IMG/VR virus record: IMGVR_UViG_3300020442_000005
Location: 209,026-273,025 of that record
Length of the DNA: 64,000 bases
Direction: 5' to 3' (one strand)
Numbering within the stretch: position 1 is the first letter of the stretch; each line of letters starts with the position of its first letter. A program made the translations under genes and the position numbers. Below the pieces are notes generated by a model that ran no database searches, was not told the origin of the DNA, and was given only the letters and a program-made list of their open reading frames with translations. Positions 18,878 through 55,622 of the stretch are shown in pieces.

Positions 18878-18881
18878 CTTT

Positions 18882-18991: not shown

Positions 18992-19142
18992 TGGGTCTAG
19001 TTAACCTCGAGGGTTCGAACCCCTCTATGACCAAGCAGGCAGGGAGCAATGACTAGATGTCGCCAACAGAAAGATATTCACCAGTATCTCCTTTTGGTTG
19101 ATAAGCCTTGGGATAGGAAAGTGGTGAGTCCTATCCCAAAGT
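18992..19142 (+). ncRNA. candidate structured ncRNA containing a tRNA T-arm
   Basis: own promoter-like site 18956-18988; GAGGG-TTCGAAC-CCCTC T arm enclosed by GTCTAGTTA/TGACTAGAT; perfect 11-bp hairpin 19108-19139. Confidence 0.55.
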
Positions 19143-19164
19143 TCCATCCTTAACTTCATCACAC

Positions 19165-19237
<73 letters not shown>

Positions 19238-19240
19238 TAG

Positions 19241-19313
19241 GCGGGAATAGCTCAGTTGGTAGAGCACCACGTTGCCAACGTGGAAGTCGCGAGTTCAAGT
19301 CTCGTTTCCCGCT
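19241..19313 (+). tRNA. tRNA-Gly(GCC)
   Basis: GCGGGAA acceptor, CCACG-TTGCCAA-CGTGG. Confidence 0.95.
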
Positions 19314-19318
19314 CTTTT

Positions 19319-19391
19319 GGACACTTAGCTCAGCGGTCAGAGCATCCGACTCATAATCGGCAGGTCCAGGGTTCAATCCCCTGAGTGTCCA
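19319..19391 (+). tRNA. tRNA with CAT anticodon, probably Ile2 (lysidine, reads AUA) rather than Met
   Basis: GACTCATAATC anticodon arm and GG..C.TTAGCTCAG start resemble bacterial tRNA-Ile2; lacks the initiator GGG/CCC stem. Confidence 0.85.
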
Positions 19392-19396
19392 CTTTC

Positions 19397-39302: not shown

Positions 39303-39324
39303 GGATCGACTTGTTCTGTCGACG

Positions 39325-39348
39325 GGAGGTGCTTGCACCTCCTTTTTT
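39325..39348 (+). terminator. intrinsic terminator
   Basis: GGAGGTG-CTTG-CACCTCC-TTTTTT. Confidence 0.85.
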
Positions 39349-39420
39349 ATTATGGTTTTCATATACTTTTGTCCTCAAACTGTATAATTATACTTTGTTA
39401 ATGATGGGCTGAGATGTTTC

Positions 39421-40227
39421 ATGAAAAATTATGTTTTAAGAAAAATCATATCAAATTTGATTGTTGAGAACTTTAAGGTCAGAGGTTATATAAAGCCGGC
39501 TGAGAGTTTTCACTCCCTTGGCGAATTACAGGCCATGGCAAATTATGTTTTAAATCTTCAGCGTGCTGGCTATGACGCGAGGGATAAAAATTCTGGACTG
39601 TTATTGAATTTGCTCTACGAATATATGCCCCATATTGAAGACGATATAGAAAGATACGGTGCGAGATTTGACATAACAAATGTATATAACTTTTTAGAAG
39701 ATTTTGCAAACCATCGAGTCTGGTCCTTTGAAGACCAGTTTGGCCAATATTTCCCGGACATAGGTAGTTTAAGATTCTCGTATTTTTATTCTAGGGGAGA
39801 CATGGAACCATATGTGCTTCTGGATGAGAACTACACAAAGCAATTGTATGGATCCACAGATAATGTATACACTGTGAAACATTATACTACCGAAGCTGGA
39901 TTGCAAAACATAGAAGCATCAATCCAAACTGGAAAACCTTTTGATATATCATGCTTCACTGCCATGAAAAAGGAATACTTTGACAAGAAATCAAATATTT
40001 TATTGACGCTCAAAGGTAACGTGAGGGCTGGCTTTAGATCTGACGTAAAATCTTTTGCTGTCGACAACGGTAGGAGAGCATGCAACTTATTTAGACTCGG
40101 ATATCCGGGGGAAGAAACAAATATCTGCGAAAACTTAGATGGATGCGAAGACAATGCTACGTCTATTTGGAATGAATATATCGCGACACCATTAGAAATT
40201 ATCAAAGTAGAGGTATTAAACAGATGA
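39421..40227 (+). CDS. leader-bearing protein, possible ART-fold domain
   Basis: VLRKIISNLIVE leader; KHYT...ISCFT...WNEYI (H-S-E spacing). Confidence 0.6.
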   Translation: MKNYVLRKIISNLIVENFKVRGYIKPAESFHSLGELQAMANYVLNLQRAGYDARDKNSGLLLNLLYEYMPHIEDDIERYGARFDITNVYNFLEDFANHRVWSFEDQFGQYFPDIGSLRFSYFYSRGDMEPYVLLDENYTKQLYGSTDNVYTVKHYTTEAGLQNIEASIQTGKPFDISCFTAMKKEYFDKKSNILLTLKGNVRAGFRSDVKSFAVDNGRRACNLFRLGYPGEETNICENLDGCEDNATSIWNEYIATPLEIIKVEVLNR

Positions 40228-40580
40228 GAACATGGAAACCATTATTTTTTGAAAACAGTTCGCTGCCATTGATTCTTTCCGTAGTGGCGCCAATTGATAT
40301 CGGAGCTATCACACTTGGACCATTCGTATTTTCGCGTGGAGAAATGTCTGAGGTCACTAAAAATCATGAAGCAATCCATTGGCAGCAATATATAGAAACC
40401 GGGATTATTGGTTTTGTGTTGCTATACTTGCTTTACTGGGTGATTGGTTTGATAAAATACAGAGATGGACAAAAGGCATACTACCAGATACCCTTTGAAC
40501 AAGAGGCATATGAAAATCACGAGGATATGGAATATTGCCTAACCAGAAAAAGATATGAATGGTTCCGGAGAAGCATCTAA
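40224..40580 (+). CDS. small zincin-like HExxH membrane-associated protein
   Basis: AITLGPFVF...HEAIH..Q...AY..I.FE.EAY. Confidence 0.7.
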   Translation: MRTWKPLFFENSSLPLILSVVAPIDIGAITLGPFVFSRGEMSEVTKNHEAIHWQQYIETGIIGFVLLYLLYWVIGLIKYRDGQKAYYQIPFEQEAYENHEDMEYCLTRKRYEWFRRSI

Positions 40581-42157
40581 TGTGGCAGCTAAGAAAATAC
40601 ATACGGAATTTATTGTTTGAAAATTTATCAGACGCAACTATTCCACCTCCACCAAAGGAATCAATCGAAGAGTTAAGTTCGGTTATTAACCAGTACTACG
40701 ACCGTGTTAACGATGATTCTGTTCAGTACGATTTAGACGAAAGGATGGAATTGCTGTTTAACGAAGTGGTCGAAAAGAACAGTGGGGAAAACGTTGTTGA
40801 ATATGTCAAGGAACTAAAGACGCATCCACTGGAAATAGTGTCAGCACTCAAGGAATACTTTGCAAGAAAAAGACCCGAAGATGTCGCCGCAGATTTTGGT
40901 ATTGACTGGAAGAGTGATAGCGTTGATATGAAAACTATTAACAACAGTTATTCATATCCATCCGGTCACACTGCTCAATCTTATTATGTTGCACTTAAAC
41001 TATGTGATAGATATCCACAGCTTAGGAATGAGTTGTTTGAAGTAGCAGAAGCAGTTGCGCAATCTAGAATCGATCGTGGCGTACATTTTCCTTCTGATTT
41101 AGATGCTGGTCGAATTGTAGCAAATCAGCTATACCAACAAAATAAAACAAGCACTCCTGTAATTCTTGAGGGCATGGTAAGTCCAAACTCCGTATCAGGA
41201 AAATATGCAATATGGGCAGACATATCAGCGGATCAGGCTGGAAACCTCGACGAAGATTTGACGTCAATTGATTTTCTAATGTACGACTGGTCTGCCGCGG
41301 TTAAACACATTGAAGACGAGCTCAAAGAAGCCACCGCAGACGGTCGCCCAGGCGCACTAGAAATGGTCAGGGACTACGGGATTCTTGAAGCCATTACAGA
41401 TAGCGCTGTTGCATGCATGCGAGTGAGACCGTACGGCGATTACGAAGGATGCAATAGTGCTTGGGAAGTTATTAGATCAGCGGCAGATGGCGGTTTGGGT
41501 CCGACAATGTACGATTTAATTATGTCAATCGCTCCGAATGGTTTGTTTGCTGATAGATCAGAAGTTTCTCCGGCTGCTCAAAGTGTGTATCATTTTTATG
41601 CAAACAGACGAACCAGCGTAGATAAAGATTTTCTCGACCCGGGTGGATTCACAGATACAGAATATGATGACTGTAGGACCTACGGTCGCAGAGCTGATCC
41701 GTTACGTTATGCGACTAGAATGATGGCAATGGATTATTTTGATACCGAATGGCCAGACGAGCACACTCAGTTTAAGGACAATGCTGACCTTTCAGTTCTA
41801 GAACAAGCCGGCAGCGGAGATGCTGACACCTATTTCAGAGTTGTGTCAGAATGGATTATTGATAATGTGGATCCCGACTGGGATGAAGATACCTGGTACG
41901 AATGGAAAGTAGACGGTGAGCTTGATCTAATGCGTTATTGGAAGTCCGGCCCAGATCCAACCTTCGAAGATCCGGATTATTTAAATCTTTCGTACAATAC
42001 AAACTATGCGGTTTCTAGTTTCGAAGAGATGGAAGAAAACCATATGGCATTTATAAATGAAATATCAGATATGATACCAGGCTCAGAGGAAAGATTTTAT
42101 GAAGATCCCGAAGCCTTACATTTTGCTGTCAGAGATTTTTTCAGGGAGAGAGTTTGA
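40580..42157 (+). CDS. leader plus PAP2 phosphatase plus GNAT-like fusion
   Basis: MWQLRKYIRNLLFE; K..F.R.RP, SYPSGH, SR...GVHFPSD; then VILE; GLGPTMYD...GLFADR..VS.AA. Confidence 0.78.
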   Translation: MWQLRKYIRNLLFENLSDATIPPPPKESIEELSSVINQYYDRVNDDSVQYDLDERMELLFNEVVEKNSGENVVEYVKELKTHPLEIVSALKEYFARKRPEDVAADFGIDWKSDSVDMKTINNSYSYPSGHTAQSYYVALKLCDRYPQLRNELFEVAEAVAQSRIDRGVHFPSDLDAGRIVANQLYQQNKTSTPVILEGMVSPNSVSGKYAIWADISADQAGNLDEDLTSIDFLMYDWSAAVKHIEDELKEATADGRPGALEMVRDYGILEAITDSAVACMRVRPYGDYEGCNSAWEVIRSAADGGLGPTMYDLIMSIAPNGLFADRSEVSPAAQSVYHFYANRRTSVDKDFLDPGGFTDTEYDDCRTYGRRADPLRYATRMMAMDYFDTEWPDEHTQFKDNADLSVLEQAGSGDADTYFRVVSEWIIDNVDPDWDEDTWYEWKVDGELDLMRYWKSGPDPTFEDPDYLNLSYNTNYAVSSFEEMEENHMAFINEISDMIPGSEERFYEDPEALHFAVRDFFRERV

Positions 42158-43368
42158 TGGCAAATAAAAGAATACCAAGAAAGAAGGGTCAAAGAAGAAA
42201 CAGTAAAAAGCATTCTGATCTGTACACTGATGAAAACCCAAAAGGAACTATAAAAGGTTTGAAGTTTGCGACTGTCAAAGATGCAAAGGCTAGCGTGAGT
42301 AAAATTAAAAAGTCCTCGCGTTCACATAATCACAAGACACAAGCTGCAATTGCAATGGAACAACGAGCAAAAGCAGCCGGCAAGAAATCGGCTGCAGCAG
42401 TTTATAGAAAGTTTATTGAGCAACAAAAGAAGAAAACTAAAGCAAAAAACGAAACTACGAGGGCTGATCTGTTTTTGGATAGACCAACGTCTCATGTTGA
42501 CTACGACGAGTCTGTAAACGATCAAATAGCTGATTACATGGTCGATATGATGCTTATCAGAGAATACATACGGGACATTATTGTTGAGAATATGGTTTCT
42601 GTTGCAGGCGATACTATGATAACAAAGTTCAGGGAGCTTATCAATCGGTACGACGCACCAACGGGGTGGCAAGTCGAGGATCCACATTTCTTTGAGTCCG
42701 GTGGAGGAAATAGCTTGATTGGCCAAATACGTTTGCAAGGCACAAGGGAAGCACTTCCGAATCTTGACAGTGAGGTCGAAAAGCAAAAACTAAGCGCAAT
42801 ATACGCTCCATTTGCAAACCGCCGAGGTTGGAATCTTCTTCAAGTACGTGAGGAACCATTGCCATCTAGAAACCCAATTATTATGTACGAGTTAAAGTTT
42901 GATAAACAACCAAACACAAAAAATACAAACTATTTCATGTCAACTCAAGAACTACAAATCAAAGAGCAAGTGCTTCTTCATCTTACTAAGGAAAGTTATC
43001 TAAAGTCAATTCAGTCAGGCGGTTTTAAACCGGCAAGAAGCTCGTCAGACGGAATAAACTTTGGTAACGGCCGAGCCTATTTTGTATCGTGCTCTAGAAT
43101 GGATTGGGAAGATTCAAGAGATGCTGCAATTGGCTGGTTTTCTCGCGCGACAGAAACTGAGGGTTTTGCTGGAATCGACCCAACAGAAAAGCAAGTCTTG
43201 TTGGTAATTGATCCAGAGAAGATGAGGAACAACATACAATTTTACGTTGATACAGAATTTGGCTACGGTTCGGGTACAGTAGGTTATTCCGGAGTTTGGG
43301 GCGGGAAAGCAATTTATACCCCGGGGCACATACGGGCAACTGCAATTGAAGAGGTTATAGATTTATGA
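42157..43368 (+). CDS. basic N-terminal module plus internal leader plus putative ART-fold domain
   Basis: HSDLYTDENPKGTI module; internal LIREYIRDIIVE; LLHLT...I...GFKP...AYF...LLVID...IYT..HI. Confidence 0.65.
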   Translation: MANKRIPRKKGQRRNSKKHSDLYTDENPKGTIKGLKFATVKDAKASVSKIKKSSRSHNHKTQAAIAMEQRAKAAGKKSAAAVYRKFIEQQKKKTKAKNETTRADLFLDRPTSHVDYDESVNDQIADYMVDMMLIREYIRDIIVENMVSVAGDTMITKFRELINRYDAPTGWQVEDPHFFESGGGNSLIGQIRLQGTREALPNLDSEVEKQKLSAIYAPFANRRGWNLLQVREEPLPSRNPIIMYELKFDKQPNTKNTNYFMSTQELQIKEQVLLHLTKESYLKSIQSGGFKPARSSSDGINFGNGRAYFVSCSRMDWEDSRDAAIGWFSRATETEGFAGIDPTEKQVLLVIDPEKMRNNIQFYVDTEFGYGSGTVGYSGVWGGKAIYTPGHIRATAIEEVIDL

Positions 43369-44129
43369 GCACACTTAGAAAAACAATACGAAAAATATTA
43401 CTAGAGTCGGCTGTGTTGGCGGACGAACAGGCAATTGCCGTAATGAAAAAAGAAGATTTGATCTTCGTAGTTAGCATGTTAGCACCTTATGAAGGAACTA
43501 TAGCTCTTTTGCGAAGGAAATACTATGACATCGAAAACGACGATTACAACCTGTCCGATGCGGTTGGGCAGATTCAATTAGGTTCTGCGGGCGAAGAAAC
43601 AATGCAGGTTTCATTCTCTGAACTTTACCGTCAATTTCGAAACAAAGGTCTGGGCAAGCTATTATATAACGTTGCTTTGATGGCATGCACTGACGAAAAC
43701 GTTTGGCTTATGTCTGACAGGAACGATGTTTCATCCAAGGCTCAAAGGATTTGGCAAACTTGGAGCAAGCTTCCTGAATTATATGATATCGAGCAAATGG
43801 ATCATGACATGATAGGCGATGATTATTTTTTGACTGATGACGAAGATGATGATATGGTGCAAAACTCTTTCAACAATGACCAATGGCGTCCGGTATCCCC
43901 TCGAATCGAGCGCTTGCCTGACGAAGCGTACACAAGTCACGAGATGTCCGACGGTCGTTTTTTCACGGTTGAAAAAGATTCATGGTTCTTCTATGACCCA
44001 GATTACAAAAAACAGTATTTGGATTCTGGATTAACAAAAAGATTCCAGATGAAAGATGCGTACGCATTGTCAAGTTATCTAGAACAAGAAGGTTTACTTT
44101 ACTACTCGTACGAGGGACCTGCTTCATGA
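43365..44129 (+). CDS. leader plus GNAT-like acetyltransferase
   Basis: LRKTIRKILLE; FRNKGLGKLLY (motif A), LMSDR..VS..A..IW. Confidence 0.75.
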   Translation: MSTLRKTIRKILLESAVLADEQAIAVMKKEDLIFVVSMLAPYEGTIALLRRKYYDIENDDYNLSDAVGQIQLGSAGEETMQVSFSELYRQFRNKGLGKLLYNVALMACTDENVWLMSDRNDVSSKAQRIWQTWSKLPELYDIEQMDHDMIGDDYFLTDDEDDDMVQNSFNNDQWRPVSPRIERLPDEAYTSHEMSDGRFFTVEKDSWFFYDPDYKKQYLDSGLTKRFQMKDAYALSSYLEQEGLLYYSYEGPAS

Positions 44130-44740
44130 AAAATTTAAGACGATACATAAGGAGCACGCTTTTAACTGAGGTTTGTGCCGGTGCAACAGCGCAGATTCAG
44201 AAAGGTCTAGACGTTATTGAACAAAGAGACCTTAGAGTTGAAGTCTACATAGATGGAAACGATGGATATGATGTGATTCTAGTGTCAGGAGATGGGATAA
44301 GACGTGGACGGTTTGAGGTTACGACAGTCAAGAATTGCCCGGCTTATTCGACTATGTGGACCGAAGTTGATTGGAATCTAAAAAAAACCGGCGTTGGGGC
44401 TGTAATGTATGACATTGCAGTAGAGGTTGCTACAAAACTTGGCGGACACTTGGCGTGTGATAGAGGATCTGTGAGCGATTCCGCGAAGCGCATGTGGAGA
44501 TACTATACTTCATCGGATGATTACGAAGCATTCCAGTTAGACACACCAGACTCTACTTTTACGCCGATAAAAAGTGATGATTGTCAACAGTACATTTTTC
44601 ACAGAGAAACAAAATTATATAGTGGTGATGAAGGTTTCGAACAAGAATTTATGGCATCGCCTTTTACAAAAGCTTTTCGAAAAAAGAAAATAACGACAAT
44701 TCCATGTTTGGGTAATCGATACTCGGAGATTAGAGTATGA
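44126..44740 (+). CDS. leader plus GNAT-like acetyltransferase
   Basis: MKNLRRYIRSTLLTE; LKKTGVGAVMYD, LACDR.SVS..A...W. Confidence 0.72.
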   Translation: MKNLRRYIRSTLLTEVCAGATAQIQKGLDVIEQRDLRVEVYIDGNDGYDVILVSGDGIRRGRFEVTTVKNCPAYSTMWTEVDWNLKKTGVGAVMYDIAVEVATKLGGHLACDRGSVSDSAKRMWRYYTSSDDYEAFQLDTPDSTFTPIKSDDCQQYIFHRETKLYSGDEGFEQEFMASPFTKAFRKKKITTIPCLGNRYSEIRV

Positions 44741-45693
44741 AAAATTTAAGACAATACATAAGAAAGATTTTGATAGAGTCTGCCAATACAATACACCCAA
44801 AGATTAAAAGCATGCTTGACGAGCTAGAAGAAAATTATGGAGAGATTAACATCCAAAATTATCCCAACCAGGGGCAACTTGTTGAGATAAGGTTTTATGC
44901 TGGCGCTCAGCATGGTGATAGGTATTATAACACTGGTGTTGGCGGTGGATCTGATGCTGGCGCCGTGTTCGCAATGTATTCCAAGGATAGTGTTGTTCCA
45001 TCTATGTCTACGAAAATAGGCAATTGCAATGGTGCAGTGCCCATCGGTGGTGTAGATGGCAGTCAGATCGCAGTAGAATATGGCTTTGGTCCGTTGCTTT
45101 ATGATGTTCTTTTTGATGCGGCAGTTATGCTGAGTGGAGCTACTGGGCTGACTTGCGATTACTATTCCGTAAGCGACGAAGCATACAACGTTTGGAATTA
45201 TTATCTAAAAAACCGGCCAGATATGATTGCAAAACAAAAAGACTTGACACAATATCCTCGCACTCCCGATGAATCCGATGATTGTACCGGGCCTGGTGCC
45301 GGCGGAAGTTTTGGATATAGATCCGTTGCGAAGCGGTTCGGCTTTGATAAATCTTACGGTGTAAAAGCGTCAGACAAGGATGGCATGCCGGTCCGGACCG
45401 GAGAACTTACACCGGAGTTTATCGATCATTGGTTCGACCCGGAAAACCCTCTTTCGAAAACCTATCATAGGAAAAGCGGTGGCACACCGGTCATCGATTA
45501 CTTGCGATCAAATTTTCTTTTAAACCCTAAGGCTGCAAAAGTCATAGGGCAACCGTACTCTCCGGCTGAGCTAAAAAAAGTATGGGACAGAACCATAGGC
45601 ATAGAAGAGGCCGGATATCCAGATTACATGGCAAAAAAAGCAAAGCAATGGCAGCAAAACTTTGGAGCAAACGCCGAGGATCTATTAGCATGA
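44737..45693 (+). CDS. leader plus GNAT-like acetyltransferase
   Basis: MKNLRQYIRKILIE; GFGPLLYD, GLTCD..SVS.EA..VW. Confidence 0.7.
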   Translation: MKNLRQYIRKILIESANTIHPKIKSMLDELEENYGEINIQNYPNQGQLVEIRFYAGAQHGDRYYNTGVGGGSDAGAVFAMYSKDSVVPSMSTKIGNCNGAVPIGGVDGSQIAVEYGFGPLLYDVLFDAAVMLSGATGLTCDYYSVSDEAYNVWNYYLKNRPDMIAKQKDLTQYPRTPDESDDCTGPGAGGSFGYRSVAKRFGFDKSYGVKASDKDGMPVRTGELTPEFIDHWFDPENPLSKTYHRKSGGTPVIDYLRSNFLLNPKAAKVIGQPYSPAELKKVWDRTIGIEEAGYPDYMAKKAKQWQQNFGANAEDLLA

Positions 45694-46382
45694 ACCAATT
45701 GAGAAATTACATAAGGCAAGTTTTAGTTGAAATGGCTGCACCGCGACCAATTGACTTAGATGCTGTATATTATCATGGGACACCTACGAAGGCAAATGCC
45801 GAGGATATAATGATCAATGGTATAAAGGCACCTGATTTGTCGTCCAGAGAAGGCTATCTTCGACCAGTTGAAGGAAAAGTTTATCTCACAAGAGATTTGG
45901 CATACGCTCAAATCTATGCTTTGGGCGGTGACCTTGCAGGCAAAAATGTTCCTGATTCGTTTAAGGGATATGGACAATACGGGTATGTTTTTGTTGTCGA
46001 CGGCAAACAGCTAAAAGACATACAACCAGATGAAGACAGTGTTGGCGAATTGGTATATAACGAGGAAATAGATTGGCTTGATGAGTTAGCTAAGGATATC
46101 CTTAAATACGAAGAATACGATGACTTCGGGCAGGATCTTGGCTATAGAAACCTTTACGATGCGATAATTGGCGGCGAATACGACGCATGGGCTGCCGGAG
46201 GCAAAATTTTGTTAGATGAAATGTCTGATGATCAAAAACTTAATCTACTCGATTATGGTGCCCATGTTGCACACACAGGAAATCTCATACCAAAAGAAAC
46301 ATGGAGAATAGAAAGAAATAAAACACCCGAATTGCAGAAAGATGGTTCGAACTTTTTTGATCTAGCGGAGCGGATAAAGTGA
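45690..46382 (+). CDS. leader plus putative ADP-ribosyltransferase-fold protein
   Basis: MNQLRNYIRQVLVE; YYHGT...I...GI...VYLT...A..YA...PDED. Confidence 0.65.
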   Translation: MNQLRNYIRQVLVEMAAPRPIDLDAVYYHGTPTKANAEDIMINGIKAPDLSSREGYLRPVEGKVYLTRDLAYAQIYALGGDLAGKNVPDSFKGYGQYGYVFVVDGKQLKDIQPDEDSVGELVYNEEIDWLDELAKDILKYEEYDDFGQDLGYRNLYDAIIGGEYDAWAAGGKILLDEMSDDQKLNLLDYGAHVAHTGNLIPKETWRIERNKTPELQKDGSNFFDLAERIK

Positions 46383-47050
46383 AAGTGTTAAGGCAATACG
46401 TAAGACAGATACTTCTGACAGAAGCAATGAAAACAGAAACGGATCTACCCGACGATATCGGCGTTGAAATTTACGATTATAAAAAATCGGCTGCCTATAT
46501 TGGCTTTTGCGAAATTGATAAAAACGGAAATTACGTAAAAAGTTTATCTCCCGGACTTGAAGTAGCTGAAAATACAATTTTTAGTTCAGAACCAGAACCT
46601 TTACCCGAGAAGTTTCGGCATCCCTCCGGTATTTTTGGCACCGTTGGAATAGAACTATTGAGAGACTGGGGAGATCCGGACTGTGATGGCGCATGGATCA
46701 TAACTAACACGGTAGCGACACCAGGCTACGGTCCATTACTTTACGATGTTGCAATTGAATGGGCTACCATGCATGGCACCGGCCTTGTGTCTGATCGATA
46801 TAATGTTTCAGATGACGCGCGAAAAGTTTGGGCAAAGTATGCGGCACGGATTGATGTCGACAAGTTTCAATGTGACGACGAAAACAATGCATTAACACCT
46901 ATTGACTCTGATAACTTAGAGCAACATGCCGCAAGGAAAAACTTGCCAGGTGGTTCAGACTTTACCAGTAGTCCTTTGAGCAAACGCTATTCAAAGAGTC
47001 CCACAAGAATAAATAGCCTTAAGTCCCTCAGAAAACTGTTTTTTACATAA
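46379..47050 (+). CDS. leader plus GNAT-like acetyltransferase
   Basis: VLRQYVRQILLTE-AMKT; GYGPLLYDVAIEWA, GLVSDR..VS..A..VW. Confidence 0.72.
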   Translation: MKVLRQYVRQILLTEAMKTETDLPDDIGVEIYDYKKSAAYIGFCEIDKNGNYVKSLSPGLEVAENTIFSSEPEPLPEKFRHPSGIFGTVGIELLRDWGDPDCDGAWIITNTVATPGYGPLLYDVAIEWATMHGTGLVSDRYNVSDDARKVWAKYAARIDVDKFQCDDENNALTPIDSDNLEQHAARKNLPGGSDFTSSPLSKRYSKSPTRINSLKSLRKLFFT

Positions 47051-47063
47051 ATGAGATTACAAA

Positions 47064-47894
47064 ATGAAATACTTACAACAATATATAAGGCAGCTGCTCA
47101 TAGAAGTATACGAACTGGATGACCAGCAGAAAGTGAATAGGGATAGTCTAATCAGAATGGACTACGGTGGAAAAGAAATGGCACACGTTGCGGGTCTAGA
47201 CACGGCTGAAGAACAACGTGAAGATCGGGAACTTCTTCGAAGATATCAAGAAGGACTGCTGTCTACAAGCCATGGTAAAAAATTGATTAGAGCCTTTCGA
47301 AACGGTGACGTCACGATCTTGCATGATATCACATACGAGGGCGCCGCGGCAAGATCAGGTTTAGGAGGAACAAAAAATAAAAAAGCTTTAGCTTCTGACT
47401 GGATCCGTAAATATGGAAGATCTGGTAACGACACTCTCTCGACAATTGCTTGTTATCTTCCTCCTACCGAGTCACTTCCCGGCATAGAACTCCATGGTAA
47501 TTCCAAGTTTGTCATGTCTAACAGGGGAATGATCATGAAAGGTTATCCAGTATTTGTTGCAAAAGAAGATGTGATGTCACAGACGATCGGCGCATTAGAC
47601 GACAAAATGAAAGCACACTGGAAAACCTCCGGCATGCCAAAGAGGCCGGCAAAATCTAGAGTACGATTCGATGATTTTGGTGATATGGAAGGAATCCAGG
47701 GCTTGCGGCATCTTAAAAAGTTGCTTGTATCCAATGAAACTCTTCTAGATAATTGGACAATAATAGGCACATACATTGGTAGTAGTGGAAATTCTGACAA
47801 TGATGTACAAGCATGGATAGCAGATTCCCTTAGCCTTGGATTGCCCTGTAACGTATATAATCAATATGGCAACCTAACGAGGTATGAACCATGA
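47064..47894 (+). CDS. leader plus LDNW-family protein (putative ART fold)
   Basis: MKYLQQYIRQLLIE; ILH...LST...KGYPV...DVMSQT...NETLLDNW. Confidence 0.6.
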   Translation: MKYLQQYIRQLLIEVYELDDQQKVNRDSLIRMDYGGKEMAHVAGLDTAEEQREDRELLRRYQEGLLSTSHGKKLIRAFRNGDVTILHDITYEGAAARSGLGGTKNKKALASDWIRKYGRSGNDTLSTIACYLPPTESLPGIELHGNSKFVMSNRGMIMKGYPVFVAKEDVMSQTIGALDDKMKAHWKTSGMPKRPAKSRVRFDDFGDMEGIQGLRHLKKLLVSNETLLDNWTIIGTYIGSSGNSDNDVQAWIADSLSLGLPCNVYNQYGNLTRYEP

Positions 47895-48604
47895 AAAACT
47901 TAAGAGAATACATAAGACAAATACTGACTGAATCAGCATATAACAGACGAGACGCGTTCATCGCGGATTTATCCAGCGCAAATTTCGATCATCACTACCG
48001 TGAAAAAGGACAAGATGATGAGGCGTATAGACGGATGTCTGCCACTGGACGTCAACTAAAGAAGGCTTTTACTTCACACGCGGACAGGGATTGGCTGAAC
48101 AGTCTAGTATATGTCCACTGGACAAGAAAGAGACGAAAAGCACTTGCGTTTCTTGCCCCGGAAATAATTAAAGATGTAAGGGTTCAATCTTCACGCGATG
48201 AATTAAGCACAATGGTGTATAAACCTGGCGCTGTGGATGGAAGCGGTTATGATTTCGGCAAATACGGATTACTTATTCGTGGCTTTGTTACACTGTTAAG
48301 CAACGACATGAACTCCGTTGATAGTGGGTACACAGGAGGCTACGCACAAGCCGATCCACAAAGGGTAGCCTCGTCCGGTGCGAATAAGGGGATTGGAGTA
48401 GCAGTCGTTGACGACATAGCTTTAGATGAGAGCGAATGGGCTCCTGTCTTCGACGGAGGCGGTAACGAAGCATTCGTCGACAACTGGAATATTTATGGAG
48501 TGATTGTTCCAGACGAAGAACACGAAACGTTTTCTAGATTCCTAGAAAAAATCAAACAACAAACAGGAAGAGAATACTTATTACTAAAAGGGAGTGAACT
48601 CTGA
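47891..48604 (+). CDS. leader plus DNW-family protein (putative ART fold)
   Basis: MKNLREYIRQILTE; YVHW...DELST...NEAFVDNW. Confidence 0.6.
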   Translation: MKNLREYIRQILTESAYNRRDAFIADLSSANFDHHYREKGQDDEAYRRMSATGRQLKKAFTSHADRDWLNSLVYVHWTRKRRKALAFLAPEIIKDVRVQSSRDELSTMVYKPGAVDGSGYDFGKYGLLIRGFVTLLSNDMNSVDSGYTGGYAQADPQRVASSGANKGIGVAVVDDIALDESEWAPVFDGGGNEAFVDNWNIYGVIVPDEEHETFSRFLEKIKQQTGREYLLLKGSEL

Positions 48605-49035
48605 TGAAAAAATTACGTAAATTTATAAGAAAAACATTGCTCAACGAGAATCCAGGCGCAAAGTTTGGTTTAGACAAATGGACTTACGACTCGTATCTAG
48701 ATAAAATTGCAGATTTAATCATGAGCGGTAAACTTGGGCTGATGGAATCTGGTCTTATGATGGCAGAGACATATGGATTAATCGAGGATAAGCCGCCCTT
48801 TAAGGTCGTGAATGAAATTGAGGGTCCTTACAATTACGGATTGACTTTTATATCAAAGAACCTATTCCTTGTCGATGTGACCATACTGGATCCGGATCTT
48901 GGAAACCGGATTTGGGCAAAAAGAAATGCCAGGAATGCACCTATGATCCAAGAGCCACCAACACACGGACCAGCGGCACGTCAGCCTTTACAGTTTCCGC
49001 TGCGCATCATATTTGGATATCTGGAAAGAGAATAA
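48604..49035 (+). CDS. leader plus unknown domain
   Basis: MKKLRKFIRKTLLNE; KIADLI..G similar to 50366 gene. Confidence 0.68.
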   Translation: MKKLRKFIRKTLLNENPGAKFGLDKWTYDSYLDKIADLIMSGKLGLMESGLMMAETYGLIEDKPPFKVVNEIEGPYNYGLTFISKNLFLVDVTILDPDLGNRIWAKRNARNAPMIQEPPTHGPAARQPLQFPLRIIFGYLERE

Positions 49036-49038
49036 ACC

Positions 49039-49668
49039 ATGAAGTACTTGCGGCAATACATAAGAAAGATACTTTTGACGGAAGCGATGAAAACACCAGC
49101 AGATCTGCCGGATGACATCGTCGTTGTAATTGACGCCGATAGTAAAGAAGCATCAATTTATTATGGTCTGGCCAATAATCCTTCCGAGTACGCACCTGAG
49201 CTGAAACCTGAGCTCTATGGTCTCAGCTCAACCGACTACATGGGCGCGATAGACATATATTCACCAGCAAAGGGGCTTTTTTATCCTTGGTATGGGAATT
49301 GTGGCGACGCTTGGATGGTCGGCGGCTCTGCTGCTCAAGAAGGCTTCGGGCCTTTGCTCTATGATATAGCAATTGAGTGGGCTACACAAAATGGTGGTGG
49401 ACTTATTTCTGACAGAAGCAGCGTATCCCCCGATGCTCAGGACGTTTGGTCCTACTACGAACGAAACAGAGATGACGTAACAGCCCATCAGCTTGATGAC
49501 CTTGAGAATACTCTTACACCTGAAGATGAAGATAACTGCGATCAAAAGATTGGCAGGTCAACCGTATCGGGGATGTATGATACCTGGCAAGATAGTCAAT
49601 TAAGTAAGCGTTATACAAAGCCACCAACAACAATGCAAGCGCTTGGCAAAAAACTGGTGATCCTATGA
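49039..49668 (+). CDS. leader plus GNAT-like acetyltransferase
   Basis: MKYLRQYIRKILLTE-AMKTP; GFGPLLYDIAIEWATQNGGGLISDR. Confidence 0.72.
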   Translation: MKYLRQYIRKILLTEAMKTPADLPDDIVVVIDADSKEASIYYGLANNPSEYAPELKPELYGLSSTDYMGAIDIYSPAKGLFYPWYGNCGDAWMVGGSAAQEGFGPLLYDIAIEWATQNGGGLISDRSSVSPDAQDVWSYYERNRDDVTAHQLDDLENTLTPEDEDNCDQKIGRSTVSGMYDTWQDSQLSKRYTKPPTTMQALGKKLVIL

Positions 49669-50336
49669 AACAATTACGGCAATACATAAGAAAGACTCTT
49701 CTTACGGAAGCAATGAAGATGCCGGCTGATCTCACAGAGAACATGTATGTTCTTATCGAAGAGAATCGCGCAGGTGACTACTTTGAAGTTACGATTAATG
49801 ATGCAAAACCAGCACAAAGATACCCAAGATCTGGCATAATAGCGGAGCTGATGGTCGGAAAGGCAGAGGACCACAACGGCCTGAATTGTGATGGAGCTTG
49901 GGTAATCATGAGTTCCGAGGCAGAGCAAGGTTATGGTCCTCTAGTTTATGACATTGCAATGGAATACGTTGGAGACGATGGGCTAATGTGCGATCGATCC
50001 GATGTGTCCTTCGAAGCTGCAGATGTTTGGGATTTTTATCTTAATTCTAGACCCGACGTCAAAGCGGTGCAGCTTGATTTTCACGAAAAACCTTTCCTCA
50101 CTCCAGATAACATGAAAGATGATTGCGACGGCCAAGTTACCCTAGCCAGGCACGTTGATAGATGGTCAAGTATGGAAGCTGGATTCGACCCTGACGATCC
50201 GTACCATAATCACCAATGGATGGATCATTGGTCGACAAAGAAATATGTTAAGCAGGGGACACCTATAATGGACGAGCTTAGGATGCGAGGGGCAATCTAT
50301 TTCGACAGGGATGACACCGGTCACTACTACTTTTAA
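49665..50336 (+). CDS. leader plus GNAT-like acetyltransferase
   Basis: MKQLRQYIRKTLLTE; GYGPLVYDIAME, GLMCDR..VS..A..VW. Confidence 0.72.
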   Translation: MKQLRQYIRKTLLTEAMKMPADLTENMYVLIEENRAGDYFEVTINDAKPAQRYPRSGIIAELMVGKAEDHNGLNCDGAWVIMSSEAEQGYGPLVYDIAMEYVGDDGLMCDRSDVSFEAADVWDFYLNSRPDVKAVQLDFHEKPFLTPDNMKDDCDGQVTLARHVDRWSSMEAGFDPDDPYHNHQWMDHWSTKKYVKQGTPIMDELRMRGAIYFDRDDTGHYYF

Positions 50337-50365
50337 CTTAGTAAACAATGAGGCAAAAGACAGCA

Positions 50366-50857
50366 ATGAAACTACTAAGAGGGACAATCAGAAAAATACT
50401 TCTGCAAGAGATGGCTCAAAGACCACCCCATATCCCAACAACTGATCCTGAAATGGAAAGAAAAGTTGCGGATTTATTAACAGGCACCATACGAGACATA
50501 GCTCTGGGTGTAGAGTTTATGAAGACTATAGACCTTACTAAAGGCGTGAAAGCCCCCGATTCATACATAAAATTTGATATCGGCCGGAAGAAAATTAAAA
50601 TGACTGAATATCACTTCAAGGTCACCCAATCTTTTTACGATGCGATCGTGGACCAACTTAAAATCAAACGACGTAAAGCCAACCCAAAGTATCACCATCA
50701 TTTGATGATTGGCCGATGGACCGAGGGTGACGCTATAATTTCAATCTCGATACCGTATGACCTCATTGGACGCGACAAATACAGAGCGGTCATGTTACGG
50801 TCTGACGAACCATACGTCGAGCACTTGCACATTGAAATTAAAGAGCCGGCTGGGTAA
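50366..50857 (+). CDS. leader plus unknown domain
   Basis: MKLLRGTIRKILLQE; alternative start 50348. Confidence 0.68.
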   Translation: MKLLRGTIRKILLQEMAQRPPHIPTTDPEMERKVADLLTGTIRDIALGVEFMKTIDLTKGVKAPDSYIKFDIGRKKIKMTEYHFKVTQSFYDAIVDQLKIKRRKANPKYHHHLMIGRWTEGDAIISISIPYDLIGRDKYRAVMLRSDEPYVEHLHIEIKEPAG

Positions 50858-50871
50858 TTAGGAAAGCCACA

Positions 50872-51441
50872 ATGAAAAATTTACGACAATACATAAGACG
50901 GATAATAAGCGAAGCCTTAGATGGAAGTGGCAATCAGCAAGAAGCAGCGTACGCTGTAATATACACCGCTGGTTACCTCGACTCATCTGACAGAGGGCTT
51001 GGTCAGCTTATCAACAAAAATCCAAAGCTTGGCGAGCAGGGTGATAAGTGGATTCCGCTCGATGATGCCCTTGCTAACGTGCATTCTGCTTTAATTGCAG
51101 CGGCTTCTGCTATTAAAAGAGAAAATCCAGAACTCGACCTTTCGGAGGAGAGTAGTATTCTTCGAGAGGGTCAGGCTGCTGGTCAGGCAGACTTCCGCGA
51201 AAGCATATACAAGTACATTGAACAAGTAGAATCTCTTGTCAATAGAGAATCGCCTATGGGAATGAGTGCTGCTGAAGGCTTGAGAGTCTTTGGAGTCAAA
51301 ACTCTGTCTCCCGGGGTTACGCTGGCAGATACCGCAGTCGCAGACGTGAGAGATCTGATCTCTTTAATGGACGACGACAATGTTCTGAGCTGGCTGGACG
51401 AAGTTGAAACCATGAAACAGTACGGTGAGCTCAAACTATAA
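50872..51441 (+). CDS. leader plus unknown helical domain
   Basis: MKNLRQYIRRIISE. Confidence 0.7.
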   Translation: MKNLRQYIRRIISEALDGSGNQQEAAYAVIYTAGYLDSSDRGLGQLINKNPKLGEQGDKWIPLDDALANVHSALIAAASAIKRENPELDLSEESSILREGQAAGQADFRESIYKYIEQVESLVNRESPMGMSAAEGLRVFGVKTLSPGVTLADTAVADVRDLISLMDDDNVLSWLDEVETMKQYGELKL

Positions 51442-52055
51442 TGAAACATTTAAGAAATTACATAAGAAAGATTCTTCTAACTGAAGCAATGAAAACCCCA
51501 GCCATGCTACCAGATGACACTGTCATTGTAATAAAACCAGTACGTCATTATATAACAATTTATTACGGTAAAGCTGATAATCCTTCTAGTAAGAGTGGAA
51601 CTGATGGTGTTGGAATCCTTGGAACAATTTCTATATTTCCAACCGGTCGACGCTCACCGGACGGCTACTTTGTCGGACTTGGTAACTGCGATGGAGCTTG
51701 GATGGTCGGACTTGCAGCTGCATCCGACGGTTGGGGTCCGCTGTTATATGACGTCGCAATCGAATGGGCAACTCAAAACGGCGGAGGACTAATTTCCGAT
51801 CGTGGAGCTGTAAGTGTACCAGCTCAAAAAGTATGGTCCTACTACGAGCAAAACAGAGATGACGTGACAGCCCACCAGCTTGATGACCTCAATAATACTC
51901 TTACACCTGAGGAGGAAGATAACTGCGATCAATCGATTGGTAGGCGGACAATAACTGGTATGTATAATACCTGGCAAGACAGTCAATTAAGTAAGCGGTA
52001 TACAAAGCCGCCCACAACAATGAACGCATTAGGCGATAAACTAGTGATTTTATGA
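51441..52055 (+). CDS. leader plus GNAT-like acetyltransferase (close paralog of 49039)
   Basis: MKHLRNYIRKILLTE; C-terminal half nearly identical to 49039 gene. Confidence 0.72.
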   Translation: MKHLRNYIRKILLTEAMKTPAMLPDDTVIVIKPVRHYITIYYGKADNPSSKSGTDGVGILGTISIFPTGRRSPDGYFVGLGNCDGAWMVGLAAASDGWGPLLYDVAIEWATQNGGGLISDRGAVSVPAQKVWSYYEQNRDDVTAHQLDDLNNTLTPEEEDNCDQSIGRRTITGMYNTWQDSQLSKRYTKPPTTMNALGDKLVIL

Positions 52056-52774
52056 AGAACTTGCGGCAATACATAAGACAGACAATTCTCGAGAATAAGG
52101 AGGCATTTTTAGATGATCTCCTGTCAAATCCAAATTGGGATGAAGGTGCTCGCGATGCATTTAGTGACGAAACATACGATGACTATATTCAAAAATATCC
52201 TAAAGCCAGGAAACGCGGCAGATTAGTCAAGCAGGTGTGGGCTAAACACGTGGATAGAGAATATATTAATTCACTCATATACATTCACTGGGGCGGTATT
52301 TCAAGTATATACAATATTTTAAAATCGTCAATCGATGGCAGTCCAAAGAAGGATGAATTAGCATGCTCAGGTTATGAACCAGGAAAAGTCGCTGAAAGAA
52401 ACAGAGTCGGCAGTACAGGTTTGGTTATTGAAGGGCATGTCTCTTTGTTTGGAAACCACATGAACGACGTATTTTCAGGCGAGCTAGATCTAATTAAAAA
52501 GTTTAATCCAGAAATGGGTCCAACATCAGGCTACAACAGAGGTACTCTTTCGGCAATTGCCGACACGTTTATCTTGGACAGAGAATCTTTTATCCATCGA
52601 AACAATCCGGATCAAAACCGTACTGAGGCTTTTTTAGACAATTGGAAGATCAAAGCATTAGTGTTCGAGCCTGATAGTGATCTCTGGCGAGGTCAGGCGC
52701 AAAAGGATTTGGTAAATTCAATCCGCACAGAATTCAAGTTAGACATCCCCATCCTTAGACCTAGAGATCTGTAA
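52052..52774 (+). CDS. leader plus DNW-family protein (putative ART fold; paralog of 47891)
   Basis: MKNLRQYIRQTILE; H.DRE..NSL.Y.HW...DELAC...TEAFLDNW. Confidence 0.6.
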   Translation: MKNLRQYIRQTILENKEAFLDDLLSNPNWDEGARDAFSDETYDDYIQKYPKARKRGRLVKQVWAKHVDREYINSLIYIHWGGISSIYNILKSSIDGSPKKDELACSGYEPGKVAERNRVGSTGLVIEGHVSLFGNHMNDVFSGELDLIKKFNPEMGPTSGYNRGTLSAIADTFILDRESFIHRNNPDQNRTEAFLDNWKIKALVFEPDSDLWRGQAQKDLVNSIRTEFKLDIPILRPRDL

Positions 52775-53439
52775 TGAAACATTTGCGACAATACATAAGA
52801 GGAATACTTCTAACTGAAGGTATGAAAACAGAGGCCGATCTGCCTGACGGCATTGGTATTATAATCAGGCAAAGAGCCTGGGAAGACAATCCGTCTAATA
52901 TTGTAATATCGTACTACAACTTGAATACAGAATATCCTCTGGAAACCGACAGAGAAAACATCATCCCATGGGGTATGGTCACCCTCGGCTTAGTATATCC
53001 ATATGAGCCGGCATACAACGGGCAAGATGAACGTTTCAATCTCCCGGAAGATACTAGTAATCTTACATGCGGAAATGCTTTTCAGATTTTCACCACCGAT
53101 GCTGCTGATGGATGGGGTCCCTTACTTTATGACGTCGCAATCGAATGGGCTACAATGAATGGTAACGGACTAATATCTGATCGATCTGGCGTGTCCGAGG
53201 ATGCTCAAGCCGTTTGGGAATACTACATGTACAATAGACCGGACGTCCAAAAGTTCCAATGCGATGATCACTTAAACACCTTAACTGCCACGTTAGATGA
53301 TAACGTCGATATGAATATACCCATGGCTGACGGCCGCTCATATTTTCCGGAAGATTTAGAGAATGATCCCCTAGGAAAAAGATACACGAAGGAACCGACA
53401 CGGATAAGACAATTAGGCGATAAACTGGTGATCCGATGA
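52774..53439 (+). CDS. leader plus GNAT-like acetyltransferase
   Basis: MKHLRQYIRGILLTE; GWGPLLYDVAIEWA, GLISDR..VS..A..VW. Confidence 0.72.
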   Translation: MKHLRQYIRGILLTEGMKTEADLPDGIGIIIRQRAWEDNPSNIVISYYNLNTEYPLETDRENIIPWGMVTLGLVYPYEPAYNGQDERFNLPEDTSNLTCGNAFQIFTTDAADGWGPLLYDVAIEWATMNGNGLISDRSGVSEDAQAVWEYYMYNRPDVQKFQCDDHLNTLTATLDDNVDMNIPMADGRSYFPEDLENDPLGKRYTKEPTRIRQLGDKLVIR

Positions 53440-53807
53440 AACACTTGCGGCAATACATAAGATTATTATTGGAAAATAACGACGAGATGATAGAGCACAT
53501 TAATGGAATCATCGAAGATTATAAGCTTAGTGATATAGGTCCGGACCACTGGAACCAACTTGACGATATGATCGAAGATATCTTCCCAGGCACAAAACCG
53601 CCAAACATGAAAGTCTGGTCTGCCGCCCATCCATTGAATGGTGAGGTTTTCGAATCGTATGTGACACAAGAAGAAGCCTTGACCGTTCACCTTAGAGATG
53701 CAAACATTGTGCCGGCCGATAATGATGGCACCGAAGTTCAAACGCCAGAGATTCTAGATTGGGATCCAACTGGATATGCTTACATTATGAGTTGGGAAAT
53801 CAAATGA
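53436..53807 (+). CDS. leader plus acidic unknown domain
   Basis: MKHLRQYIRLLLE. Confidence 0.7.
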   Translation: MKHLRQYIRLLLENNDEMIEHINGIIEDYKLSDIGPDHWNQLDDMIEDIFPGTKPPNMKVWSAAHPLNGEVFESYVTQEEALTVHLRDANIVPADNDGTEVQTPEILDWDPTGYAYIMSWEIK

Positions 53808-54637
53808 AAAACTTGCGGCAATACATAAGAAAGATACTATCAGAAGTGTACGAGCTCACACCAGAAGAAGACAAGACTCGGCGAGAAGATTTTGCTTATC
53901 AATCTGCAGCTAGACGCTCCTTAGGCCTTCAAACATCGGCCGAGATTATAGAAGACAGGGAAGAATTGCAGAATTACCAGGCGCGACTTAAAAGCTCGAC
54001 GGAAGGTAAAGAACTAATCCGAAGATTTATGAAAGGAACAGACGTCACTATCATGCACAGCATAAACTATTCCGGATATGCTGCTTTAAGAGGTTATAAA
54101 TCCTTCGATAGAGTCGATAAAAGTATGCCTTTCCAAAGATGGATTGGGCAACACGGCCGAAAGGGAAAAGACGTGCTCTCATGTGTAGCATCCGACCAAC
54201 CGCTCGGTATGGACTTCTTAATCGGAAATGATAATCCAGCTGCAGCTCACGGATTCGGCTTCATTATGAAAGGATACCCGGTCTACATTTCCGAAACAGA
54301 CGTAATGTCTCAAACACTAGGAGCTATCCCGCCAGGTTTAGTAAAGCACCAAGAACAATCCGGTGTGGCAAAACGACCCGGTGACACTTCCGCAGGAATA
54401 ATCGAATTGGATTTCGGCTGGGCTGGAGAAGTGCTGCTCGACAACTGGACGATCATCGGCACGTACATGGATATAAGCGGCAACAATGATTTAGCTGTAT
54501 TTGAGACACTTGCTCGGGATTCGATCAGCATGTTCAAACCCGTCCCTTTCTATGTTTACGATGACGGATATTTTGTCGGCAAAATAACAGATAAAGATTC
54601 TATGTTTGAGGTAAGAGAAAAACTATTCGGATTTTAA
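53804..54637 (+). CDS. leader plus LDNW-family protein (putative ART fold; paralog of 47064)
   Basis: MKNLRQYIRKILSE-VYEL; IMH...LSC...KGYPV...DVMSQT...GEVLLDNW. Confidence 0.6.
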   Translation: MKNLRQYIRKILSEVYELTPEEDKTRREDFAYQSAARRSLGLQTSAEIIEDREELQNYQARLKSSTEGKELIRRFMKGTDVTIMHSINYSGYAALRGYKSFDRVDKSMPFQRWIGQHGRKGKDVLSCVASDQPLGMDFLIGNDNPAAAHGFGFIMKGYPVYISETDVMSQTLGAIPPGLVKHQEQSGVAKRPGDTSAGIIELDFGWAGEVLLDNWTIIGTYMDISGNNDLAVFETLARDSISMFKPVPFYVYDDGYFVGKITDKDSMFEVREKLFGF

Positions 54638-54663
54638 AACCAAAAAAACCGCGGCTAAACATC

Positions 54664-55068
54664 ATGAACTACGTTCCCAAAACCAACGACCTTATTCTCT
54701 TCACAGAACCCACCTCAGGAATCCTATCAGACTTTGGTATCAATGACAAACACTACAACTGGTCCCACTCCATTGTAAACGTAGAACCTAACCAATCCGC
54801 CCTTGTCATTGACACCTATACTATAGACAACAACCGTTCCAACCGCTCCTTCACCAACCCCACTCTTTCCAATACTCTCAACATTGCTATAGAACTTACA
54901 AGACACCACAAACCCTACATTCCACAACCTCCCACCATTCTCATTGTCTCCCTTTCAGACCTCATCATTGAAGTCCTATTCGATCCAGACCTACTTCAAC
55001 CCATTCCCCACCCGTCTAACCTACTCCCACCTAAACATCCTCCCCTACAAATGACCCTGGCTAGATAA
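54664..55068 (+). CDS. hypothetical protein in extremely G-poor DNA
   Basis: 134 aa ORF; composition atypical. Confidence 0.45.
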   Translation: MNYVPKTNDLILFTEPTSGILSDFGINDKHYNWSHSIVNVEPNQSALVIDTYTIDNNRSNRSFTNPTLSNTLNIAIELTRHHKPYIPQPPTILIVSLSDLIIEVLFDPDLLQPIPHPSNLLPPKHPPLQMTLAR

Positions 55069-55227
55069 CCATAGGACATGGCTAAACCATATACCACCTT
55101 GCATACCTAGCATTCACACAAAAGCACCCTAAGGATTCGCAAGAATGAAAAGTGACTAGGTGTATAGGCTACCGGGCTTAGCTCCCTCTCACGCGACCTC
55201 GGGCATCTATCGGTTCGGTCACTCTCG

Positions 55228-55416
55228 GTGTAACAGAAACAGAAACAATTTGTTTCACTTGTTACACTTTGCTCGCTCATCCGAAAGCATGGCGGTTCCA
55301 TAATAGTAGGACAGGCCTGTCAAAGCAATTGTTTCATGAAACATGTTTCTGTTTCTTTGGTGTTTCACTATAATTGAAATTGGTTTTGGTTTCGCTATAA
55401 TTGAAATTGATTTCAC
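55228..55416. repeat. cluster of GAAACA/TGTTTC inverted and direct repeats (left)
   Basis: GTGTAACA..TGTTACAC inverted repeat 55228-55267; TGTTTCATGAAACA palindrome; 21-nt direct repeat at 55362 and 55389. Confidence 0.8.
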
Positions 55417-55567
55417 TTGCAAAAGTTATCGGCCCCCTACAAAAGCAGTCAGGTTCCGGCAGGTGATACGCGACTATGGAAAGCAGGGATGGATGAAAAG
55501 CCGGGATAGGGTTGCCGTAGAGCAGATGGAGAAAAAGAGAAATAAAGAGAAATAAAATGTGAAAGTT

Positions 55568-55622
55568 TGTGTAAGCTGCTCTACGGCGGGATACATTATA
55601 AGTGTAAGGAGAAACCTTGCAA
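55568..55622 (+). promoter_or_regulatory. conserved early promoter plus 5' hairpin (copy 3)
   Basis: TGTGTA-N18-TACATTATAAGTGTAAGGAGAAACCTTGCAA. Confidence 0.8.

Follow-up and report, generated by a model that had tools for sequence, protein, structure and literature searches.

Why would about 20 mostly unrelated proteins, encoded together in one operon, begin with the same short peptide? The question is raised by a 15-kb operon at positions 39421-54637 of the final 64 kb of IMG/VR contig 3300020442_000005 (273,025 bp); these 64 kb, which we call the window, come from an uncultured 273-kb marine phage with a T4-type head. A first-pass annotation of the window had proposed that the shared leader is a modular head-loading address. 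The present analysis supports this proposal through the occurrence of the tag throughout a clade of relatives, an S77 prohead protease in the same genome, the sequence L-R-E/A at the capsid maturation site, and the enrichment of the cleavage motif in the scaffold protein. We consider it likely, from sequence comparisons, that the leader is a capsid-targeting address, removed by a protease, on a fast-evolving set of packaged enzymes.

A six-frame scan of the window found the leader motif on the plus strand only (40589-53813), always at or near the start of an open reading frame (ORF). The scan and independent ENA gene calls, which agree on the array starts, bear out the 19 leader genes counted earlier: 17 consecutive genes (43365-54637) and two upstream genes, 39421 (degenerate leader) and 40580. 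To these are added one internal leader copy in the gene at 42157-43368 (residue 134, nt about 42550-42597, 19.2 bits) and one gene with no leader (40224-40580). The array is mostly translationally coupled, as had been stated, with overlaps of 4 or 1 nt at 14 of its 20 junctions. Nine array genes form a single paralogous family (family A); all genes are listed in Table 1.

The leader consensus is M-K-x-L-R-x-Y-I-R-x-x-L-(x)-x-E, 14-15 residues in length. We built a position matrix from 391 distinct leader-tagged proteins on about 1 Mb of related marine contigs. L4, R5, Y7, I8, and R9 are conserved at 90-99% in this set, and position 12 is Leu or Ile in 97% (it lies three before the Glu only where the Glu is at position 14, i.e., in 73%). 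Glu is found at position 13-15 in 385 of the 391 proteins (98%), and no position is conserved beyond it. The array genes score 18-37 bits against the matrix, with only 11.4 bits for 39421; random peptides attain 8 bits at about 6e-6 per position. Among pairs of codons for the same leader residue, 47% use different codons, and selection therefore acts on the leader peptide rather than on the DNA.

The leader had been described as basic and amphipathic. The first property holds in this genome and fails as a general trait, since relatives carry Glu at positions 6 and 10. The second holds only moderately: the hydrophobic moment is 0.54-0.65 vs. 0.33 for shuffled sequences, and 13% and 4.5% of the shuffles reach these values. 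AlphaFold 2 (AF2) models were examined for two array proteins, 49039-49668 and 45690-46382. The leader appears as a detached helix with a predicted local distance difference test (pLDDT) score of 40-54, and the cargo scores >90; residues 1-15 of the 49039-49668 model are helical with pLDDT below 50. A leader that is an integral part of each cargo fold was thus not seen, as it lies outside the cargo fold in both models.

Scanning of relatives with the leader model showed the tag throughout the clade on many unrelated cargos. The leader DNA pattern was found in 32 stretches from about 22 viral contigs, most of them 100-318 kb in length, and relatives also carry arrays of 15-17 co-oriented leader genes. 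The first 132 leader proteins fall into at least 45 BLAST cargo families (this count refers to the first set; single-linkage clustering of the enlarged set merged families), and family A alone has at least 574 confirmed matches in marine metagenomes. Cargos of the window and of relatives are 23-63% identical, as against 96% for the capsid C-terminus. Many internal leader copies have a hydrophobic-x-E-[S/A] site ahead of them, which is expected if fused cargos are later cut apart. Two sets of GenBank contigs, binned as Methylococcaceae bacterium TMED69 (305,838 bp) and Halobacteriovorax sp. SP2999, carry leader arrays and look like mis-binned jumbo-phage genomes. Single matches to the leader pattern in bacterial genomes were taken as chance. 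The array was not matched by any cultured phage: a comparison of the array (megablast) and of one family A member (tblastn) with 50,697 phage records gave nothing.

No virion genes were found in the remainder of the window. We walked 87 kb upstream from the window to the head module along a near-identical ENA contig and then fetched the head module (L152, contig 122-142 kb of the same genome) from the contig itself; the portion of the genome read came to 151 kb (55%). About 30 leader genes lie in this portion, about 20 of them in the one operon. The first-pass annotation had suggested a search for a gp21-like protease and for the leader's (L/I)-x-E site in the capsid, scaffold, and portal proteins. 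The S77 protease shares 32% identity with T4 gp21 (E 8e-24), with the stretches GEL(D/N)HP and G(I/V)SSRG kept in their alignment. T4 gp23 is cleaved at L-T-E/A (slash, cleaved bond), and the capsid propeptide of this genome has L-R-E/A at that site. In a MAFFT alignment with T4 gp23, L-(R/K)-E was present there in 64 of 64 distinct capsid propeptides of the clade. The scaffold contains 21 [LI]-x-E sites vs. 10.4 expected from composition shuffles, and two core-region proteins are enriched by the same measure (8 vs. 1.6 and 10 vs. 3.9). The portal protein showed no excess of the site over composition shuffles.

The region between the protease and scaffold genes encodes two small proteins with a leader-like helix each, N-terminal in one (8.1 bits) and C-terminal in the other (12.4 bits); the chance expectation for such matches is about 0.02. 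Orthologues of each protein, found in different relatives, retain the helix at the same place. These two small proteins may be docking partners of the leader or its evolutionary source. A tblastn search of about 1 Mb of array-centered loci did not detect T4 head proteins, and a gp21 candidate at 6302-6439 of the window was a weak match that we dismissed as noise. In the best 80 (loci L152-L231) of at least 576 confirmed IMG/VR stretches, which come from many environments, the C-terminal 109 residues of the capsid protein were 87-100% identical; this head lineage is very abundant.

We infer from these results that the array proteins are packaged, cleaved, and injected, and that the cargos take part in host take-over or counter-defence. 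As the prohead assembles, the N-terminal amphipathic helix would draw each protein into its scaffolding core, where the gp21-type serine protease would remove the leader after the conserved Glu (L/I-x-E). The mature cargos would remain inside the head alongside the DNA and be delivered into the host together with it. The 15-kb operon would then encode a fast-evolving cargo set, mostly small single-domain enzymes, acting on the host at the moment of infection.

GNAT-like, ADP-ribosyltransferase (ART)-like, and PAP2 domains had been named among the cargos, and the three assignments fared differently. The PAP2 domain of 40580-42157 is firm by profile match (Pfam gathering cut-off 27.2, score 45.1 bits, E 1.1e-11), and precomputed calls agree. 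The 45690-46382 cargo, which has 194 homologues, is probably an ART. Its AF2 model (pLDDT 93.1) retrieved ART catalytic subunits as all of the top ten PDB matches, at weak scores (E 0.06-1.5, template modeling (TM) score about 0.35). Its profile search gave Tpt1 at E 0.11, and its BFVD matches include annotated ARTs at E above 0.1; there was no Pfam match. In the cultured 309-kb soil jumbo phage Tunturi_5 (L232, PP885688.1), the same type of domain lies inside an 853-aa annotated ART exoenzyme toxin. The domain stands alone in the array, and this protein resembles a polyvalent-style fusion of it. We did not transfer the ART label from this Tunturiibacter phage match, the source protein being an 853-aa multidomain protein.

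The GNAT assignment is tentative, family A going no further than a likeness in motif A. Acetyltransf_1 was matched by 4 of 112 clade cargos at E about 0.005. The best PDB profile match of family A is a GNAT (E 0.26, over motif A, Q/R-x-x-G-x-G/A), and the canonical R-x-x-G-x-G is found within the family in 43365-44129 only. A Foldseek search of PDB with the family A model returned nothing below E 0.3, with the first GNAT in 20th place (TM 0.31). Family A may be a GNAT that has diverged strongly, or else a new fold. Other cargos of the clade match AAA_33/zeta-toxin-like kinases, RNase T, DUF192, HD_4, and SprT-like domains, and ART-PolyVal weakly. Homologues of the leaderless zincin are found mainly in Bacteroidota phages (Phocaeicola, Riemerella, Maribacter, and crAss-like phages), a weak hint of a Bacteroidota host.

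The array resembles the T4 internal proteins IPI, IPII, and IPIII in several respects. In T-even phages these proteins have nothing in common but a leader, and at least 10 variants have been described (PMC3012670, PMC12373910). In both systems a short N-terminal leader is common to otherwise unrelated proteins and ends in a gp21 site (L/I-x-E), the loci are hypervariable, and the gp20, gp21, and gp23 head genes are of the same families. The T4 leader is a 10-mer, whereas that of the array has 14-15 residues and no detectable homology to it. T4 has three internal-protein genes as compared with about 20 in one operon, and its cargos are small nuclease inhibitors rather than enzyme-like domains of 120-525 aa. 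Unlike T4, this phage also replicates with a DnaE-type polymerase.

A link between the two leader formats comes from the 45690 cargo family. Close homologues carry the long leader, and distant ones carry M-[KR]-x-F-K-x-[FY]-[IL]-x-E, a 10-residue leader in the format of T4 ipII and ipIII. Among the homologues listed, 119 could be classified: 33 have the long form and 28 the short form, and most of the others have short peptides ending in Glu. One cargo has therefore been joined to different lineage-specific addresses, all ending at Glu. T4 Alt, an ART that gp21 processes and that is delivered together with the DNA, has a possible counterpart in the ART-like cargo of the array. It may also be compared with a Mod/Alt-family protein encoded about 34 kb upstream of the window start in the near-identical ENA strain, which has a leader-like N-terminus and a weak Pfam match to Mod_ADP_RT; its packaging and activity are putative.

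Other phages offer partial parallels. The jumbo phages phiKZ and SPN3US are similar to what is proposed here: they have numerous proteins inside the head, paralogues in tandem, a protease related to S77, and presumed prohead-targeting propeptides (PMC5694885). Their cleavage motif is S/A/G-x-E and many of their propeptides exceed 100 residues, as opposed to Leu/Ile-x-E and 14-15 residues here. The 20 head proteins of SPN3US paralog family B (PMC5694885) are paralogues of one family, whereas the array has one tag on many folds. Polyvalent proteins, found in phages and conjugative elements (Iyer et al., cited in PMC7824862), share the repertoire of ART, GNAT, zeta-toxin-like kinase, SprT-like peptidase, HD, and nuclease domains and are thought to be injected with the DNA. 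They are giant multidomain polypeptides; the array consists of separate, mostly one-domain genes, each with its own address, and a few fusions with internal leaders. The non-essential Dar proteins of P1 are taken up by the head and, once injected, protect the DNA as it enters (PMC12810830, PMC9024508); a similar course is proposed for the array proteins. P1 loading is hierarchical via DarA/Hdf, in contrast to the common and putatively cleavable leader of the array. The leader motif was not printed in the literature searched, and arrays of this kind are absent from two jumbo-phage reviews. That a single leader can head unrelated cargos is established for the T-even phages; the novelty lies in the phage group, the leader family and its enzyme cargo, and the scale.

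Several observations weigh against a head-loading address. The array sits among auxiliary genes and adjoins a region of many small ORFs, typical of early genes. The -10-like octamer ahead of it, ATAATTAT, recurs in this genome upstream of the scaffold and neck (gp13) genes (at 24-25 nt), upstream of UvdE, and 27 nt ahead of the start at 1547; it is weak evidence and says little on the timing of the array, because it is not retained in relatives. The T4 ipII and ipIII leaders score -16 and -14 bits against the leader matrix (P about 0.002-0.003), which rules out the T4 leader as a member of the array leader family. The leaderless zincin-like protease within the array is a possible alternative processing enzyme. 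One further point speaks for the address, though not strongly: cargos have slightly fewer [LI]-x-E sites than expected (observed/expected 0.89) and non-array proteins have more (1.31), but the cargo depletion is modest and confounded by secondary-structure content.

The gene neighborhood, a -10-like TATAAT upstream of the array, and the moderate amphipathicity of the leader would all fit a functional tag on early take-over proteins that are not packaged, for membrane or nucleoid targeting or for oligomerization, with a coincidental likeness to a protease site. We consider this unlikely. Such a tag leaves unexplained the near-universal Glu at position 13-15 with Leu/Ile three before it and the abrupt end of conservation, and it does not account for the matching motif at the maturation site of the capsid, for head-core proteins with leader-like helices, or for cargo homologues with T4-format leaders; there is also no match to a -35 element upstream of the -10-like element. 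It is quite improbable that the array's own HExxH zincin (40224-40580) removes or recognizes the leader in a self-contained processing or activation, e.g., of zymogen-like enzymes, that has nothing to do with the capsid. A protease-family gene is indeed translationally coupled inside the array, but small Bacteroidota phages devoid of such arrays commonly carry members of its family, and the cleavage motif fits the S77 protease context instead. The Pfam record of a relative's array region (L059) contains only kinase, PAP2, peroxiredoxin, and DUF5824; the zincin of the window likewise has no Pfam record, and the zincin was not searched for in the arrays of relatives.

The presence of ClpP and ClpS in the genome and weak tubulin-family matches near the arrays of relatives would be compatible with a leader that is a degradation or regulation signal for ClpP/ClpS or that addresses another phage-built compartment, such as a nucleus-like shell or an encapsulin-like particle. 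Neither a chimallin-type shell nor a multisubunit RNA polymerase was seen in the portion read, however, and the virion genes are T4-type. Encapsulin cargo peptides differ in form from the leader, and ClpS reads N-terminal F/L/W/Y, not M-K. We regard these possibilities as highly improbable. The shared N-terminus might finally be left over from tandem duplication, or it might act at the nucleotide level in translation initiation or coupling, given that nine array genes are one paralogous family and most array junctions overlap. The leader is found on unrelated cargo families in large number, nearly half of the codon pairs are synonymous variants, and the tag is kept across genomes while the cargos turn over. 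Because of this cargo diversity and codon variation we treat the duplication relic, and the nucleotide-level element with it, as practically excluded.

If the capsid-address reading is accepted, a wider proposal can be made, which we put forward tentatively and consider somewhat more apt to fail than to hold in all its parts. Each lineage with a T4-type head would have its own capsid-address "dialect" (a 10-mer in T4 and some marine phages, a 15-mer here). The dialect would co-evolve with the helices of prohead core proteins, which the address mimics, and cargo genes would move between lineages by leader swap. In this abundant, uncultured group of marine jumbo phages, the injected enzymes marked by the tag would number in the hundreds and form an arsenal readable from sequence, an "unbundled polyvalent protein" in effect; protease sites flanking fused cargos would set them free inside the head.

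Leader-like segments were also found outside the array in the window (Table 1). In two of the three weakly matching genes at 942-2751, the segment is preceded by I-I-E-S or N-E-A. Lys/Arg-rich segments adjoin leader-like ones at 1604-2335 of the window (minus strand; 29% K+R; weak match to DUF5824) and at 42157-42550 (weak match to phrog_727), and both are reminiscent of DNA-binding internal head proteins. Downstream of the array, about 1 kb (54640-55616) has no convincing gene. It begins with a G-poor, C/A-rich stretch of negative GC skew (54664-55068) and contains two direct copies of ctataattgaaattg around 55366-55412 together with the best sigma-70-like promoter of the area, ahead of a RecA/KaiC-like gene. 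No Rfam family matches 54640-55616. The T4 late promoter TATAAATA showed no enrichment (3 found vs. 3.9 expected). The downstream side of the array on an NCBI contig has just small ORFs and RecA-like, SLT, and PolyA_pol genes.

The rest of the window contains auxiliary genes, namely metK, metH, ahcY, UvdE, cysteine synthase, QueF, DnaJ, and six tRNAs. A complete and consecutive methyl cycle, unusual in a phage, occupies 9471-15759 (metK, a QueF-like gene, B12-dependent metH of 1178 aa, and ahcY). The tRNA cluster (18122-19392) comprises Leu-TAA, Arg-TCT, Gln-TTG, Thr-TGT, Gly-GCC, and Met; three of the six read the leader-dominating codons TTA, AGA, and CAA, which may merely reflect AT-rich codon use. 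tblastn searches with metK and cysteine synthase gave metabolic homologues only and indicated no lineage, and the 954-aa and other large window proteins had no match in PHROG, Pfam, or PDB. Along the upstream walk we encountered GroEL, a sigma factor, peptide deformylase, the DnaE-type polymerase III alpha, and ClpS with ClpP, followed by ribonucleotide reductase, DnaB, RecA, a gp32-like protein, the tail module (sheath, T4_baseplate, and T4 gp13), and the head module last. The phage is thus a mosaic of T4-type head, neck, and baseplate genes with a bacterial-type DnaE polymerase III alpha carrying a PHP domain, a gp32-like single-stranded DNA-binding protein, RecA, DnaB, ClpP with ClpS, GroEL, DnaJ, and its own sigma factor. 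It probably belongs to the DnaE-bearing cluster PGC_A of Weinheimer and Aylward, an assignment made because its DnaE polymerase fits that cluster. PGC_A is a largely uncharacterized cluster of marine jumbo phages whose infection strategy has been described as unknown (PMC9123017).

Table 1. Coordinates of the leader-gene array, its flanks, and related features (window positions, unless a numbered locus L is given)
Feature	Location	Strand	Remarks
Terminator-like hairpin closing the upstream unit	39324-39343	+	8-bp stem, 5 G-C pairs, then T run
-10-like element ATAATTAT (within TATAATTATAC)	39384-39391	+	29 nt before first start codon
Leader gene 1, 268 aa, degenerate leader ending I-V-E	39421-40227	+	11.4 bits; no Pfam/PHROG match
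Leaderless HExxH zincin-like, 118 aa, hydrophobic segment, translationally coupled	40224-40580	+	phrog_15610 "protease", E 1.5e-27
Leader, PAP2 phosphatase domain, family-A-like C-terminal domain, 525 aa	40580-42157	+	Residues 267-394 match family A
403-aa protein: basic N-terminal region, internal leader, C-terminal domain	42157-43368	+	Weak phrog_727 match
Leader, family A cargo, canonical R-x-x-G-x-G	43365-44129	+	
Leader, family A cargo	44126-44740	+	
Leader, family A cargo, C-terminal extension	44737-45693	+	
Leader, ART-like cargo, 230 aa	45690-46382	+	Conserved domain begins directly after leader Glu
Leader (GTG start), family A cargo	46379-47050	+	
Leader, family B cargo	47064-47894	+	40% identical to 53804-54637
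Leader, family C cargo	47891-48604	+	32% identical to 52052-52774
Leader, singleton cargo, 143 aa	48604-49035	+	
Leader, family A cargo, modelled member	49039-49668	+	AF2 pLDDT 85.8
Leader, family A cargo	49665-50336	+	
Leader, singleton cargo, 163 aa	50366-50857	+	
Leader, singleton cargo, 189 aa	50872-51441	+	
Leader, family A cargo	51441-52055	+	66% identical to 49039-49668
Leader, family C cargo	52052-52774	+	
Leader, family A cargo	52774-53439	+	
Leader, singleton cargo, 123 aa	53436-53807	+	
Leader, family B cargo, final array gene	53804-54637	+	
Three genes, weak leader-like segments	942-2751	-	0.1-5.9 bits, weak
352-aa protein, leader-like segment at residue 65 just after internal Met	2748-3806	-	13.6 bits
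374-aa protein, strong leader-like N-terminus	29272-30396	+	25.8 bits; first L-L-E only at residues 21-23
Portal_T4	L152		E 9e-78
Peptidase_S77, gp21-type prohead protease	L152:3358-3969		E 8.4e-27
Core-region proteins with leader-like helices	L152:4350-4796; L152:5808-6308		
Scaffold-like protein, 579 aa	L152		
Gp23 capsid protein	L152		E 8e-76
Mosaic-gene loci	L146:2817-6422; L148:715-8442; L143:13045-15453		
Putatively mis-binned array loci	L048, L050, L059, L140, L142 (NHDW01000006.1); L043, L044 (PBIO01)		

Injected phage proteins act before phage gene expression and are hard to find, since they have no shared sequence. If the leader is what we propose, one short motif would label several hundred candidate injected enzymes in a cosmopolitan group of marine jumbo phages, and the tag would provide a direct list for new host-modifying and counter-defence activities. 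The leader could also serve as a second, orthogonal packaging tag for engineered protein delivery by phage heads, and the leader-like helices of the core proteins suggest a docking mechanism. The principle of the T4 internal proteins would then extend far past the T-even phages, and to enzymes rather than inhibitors.

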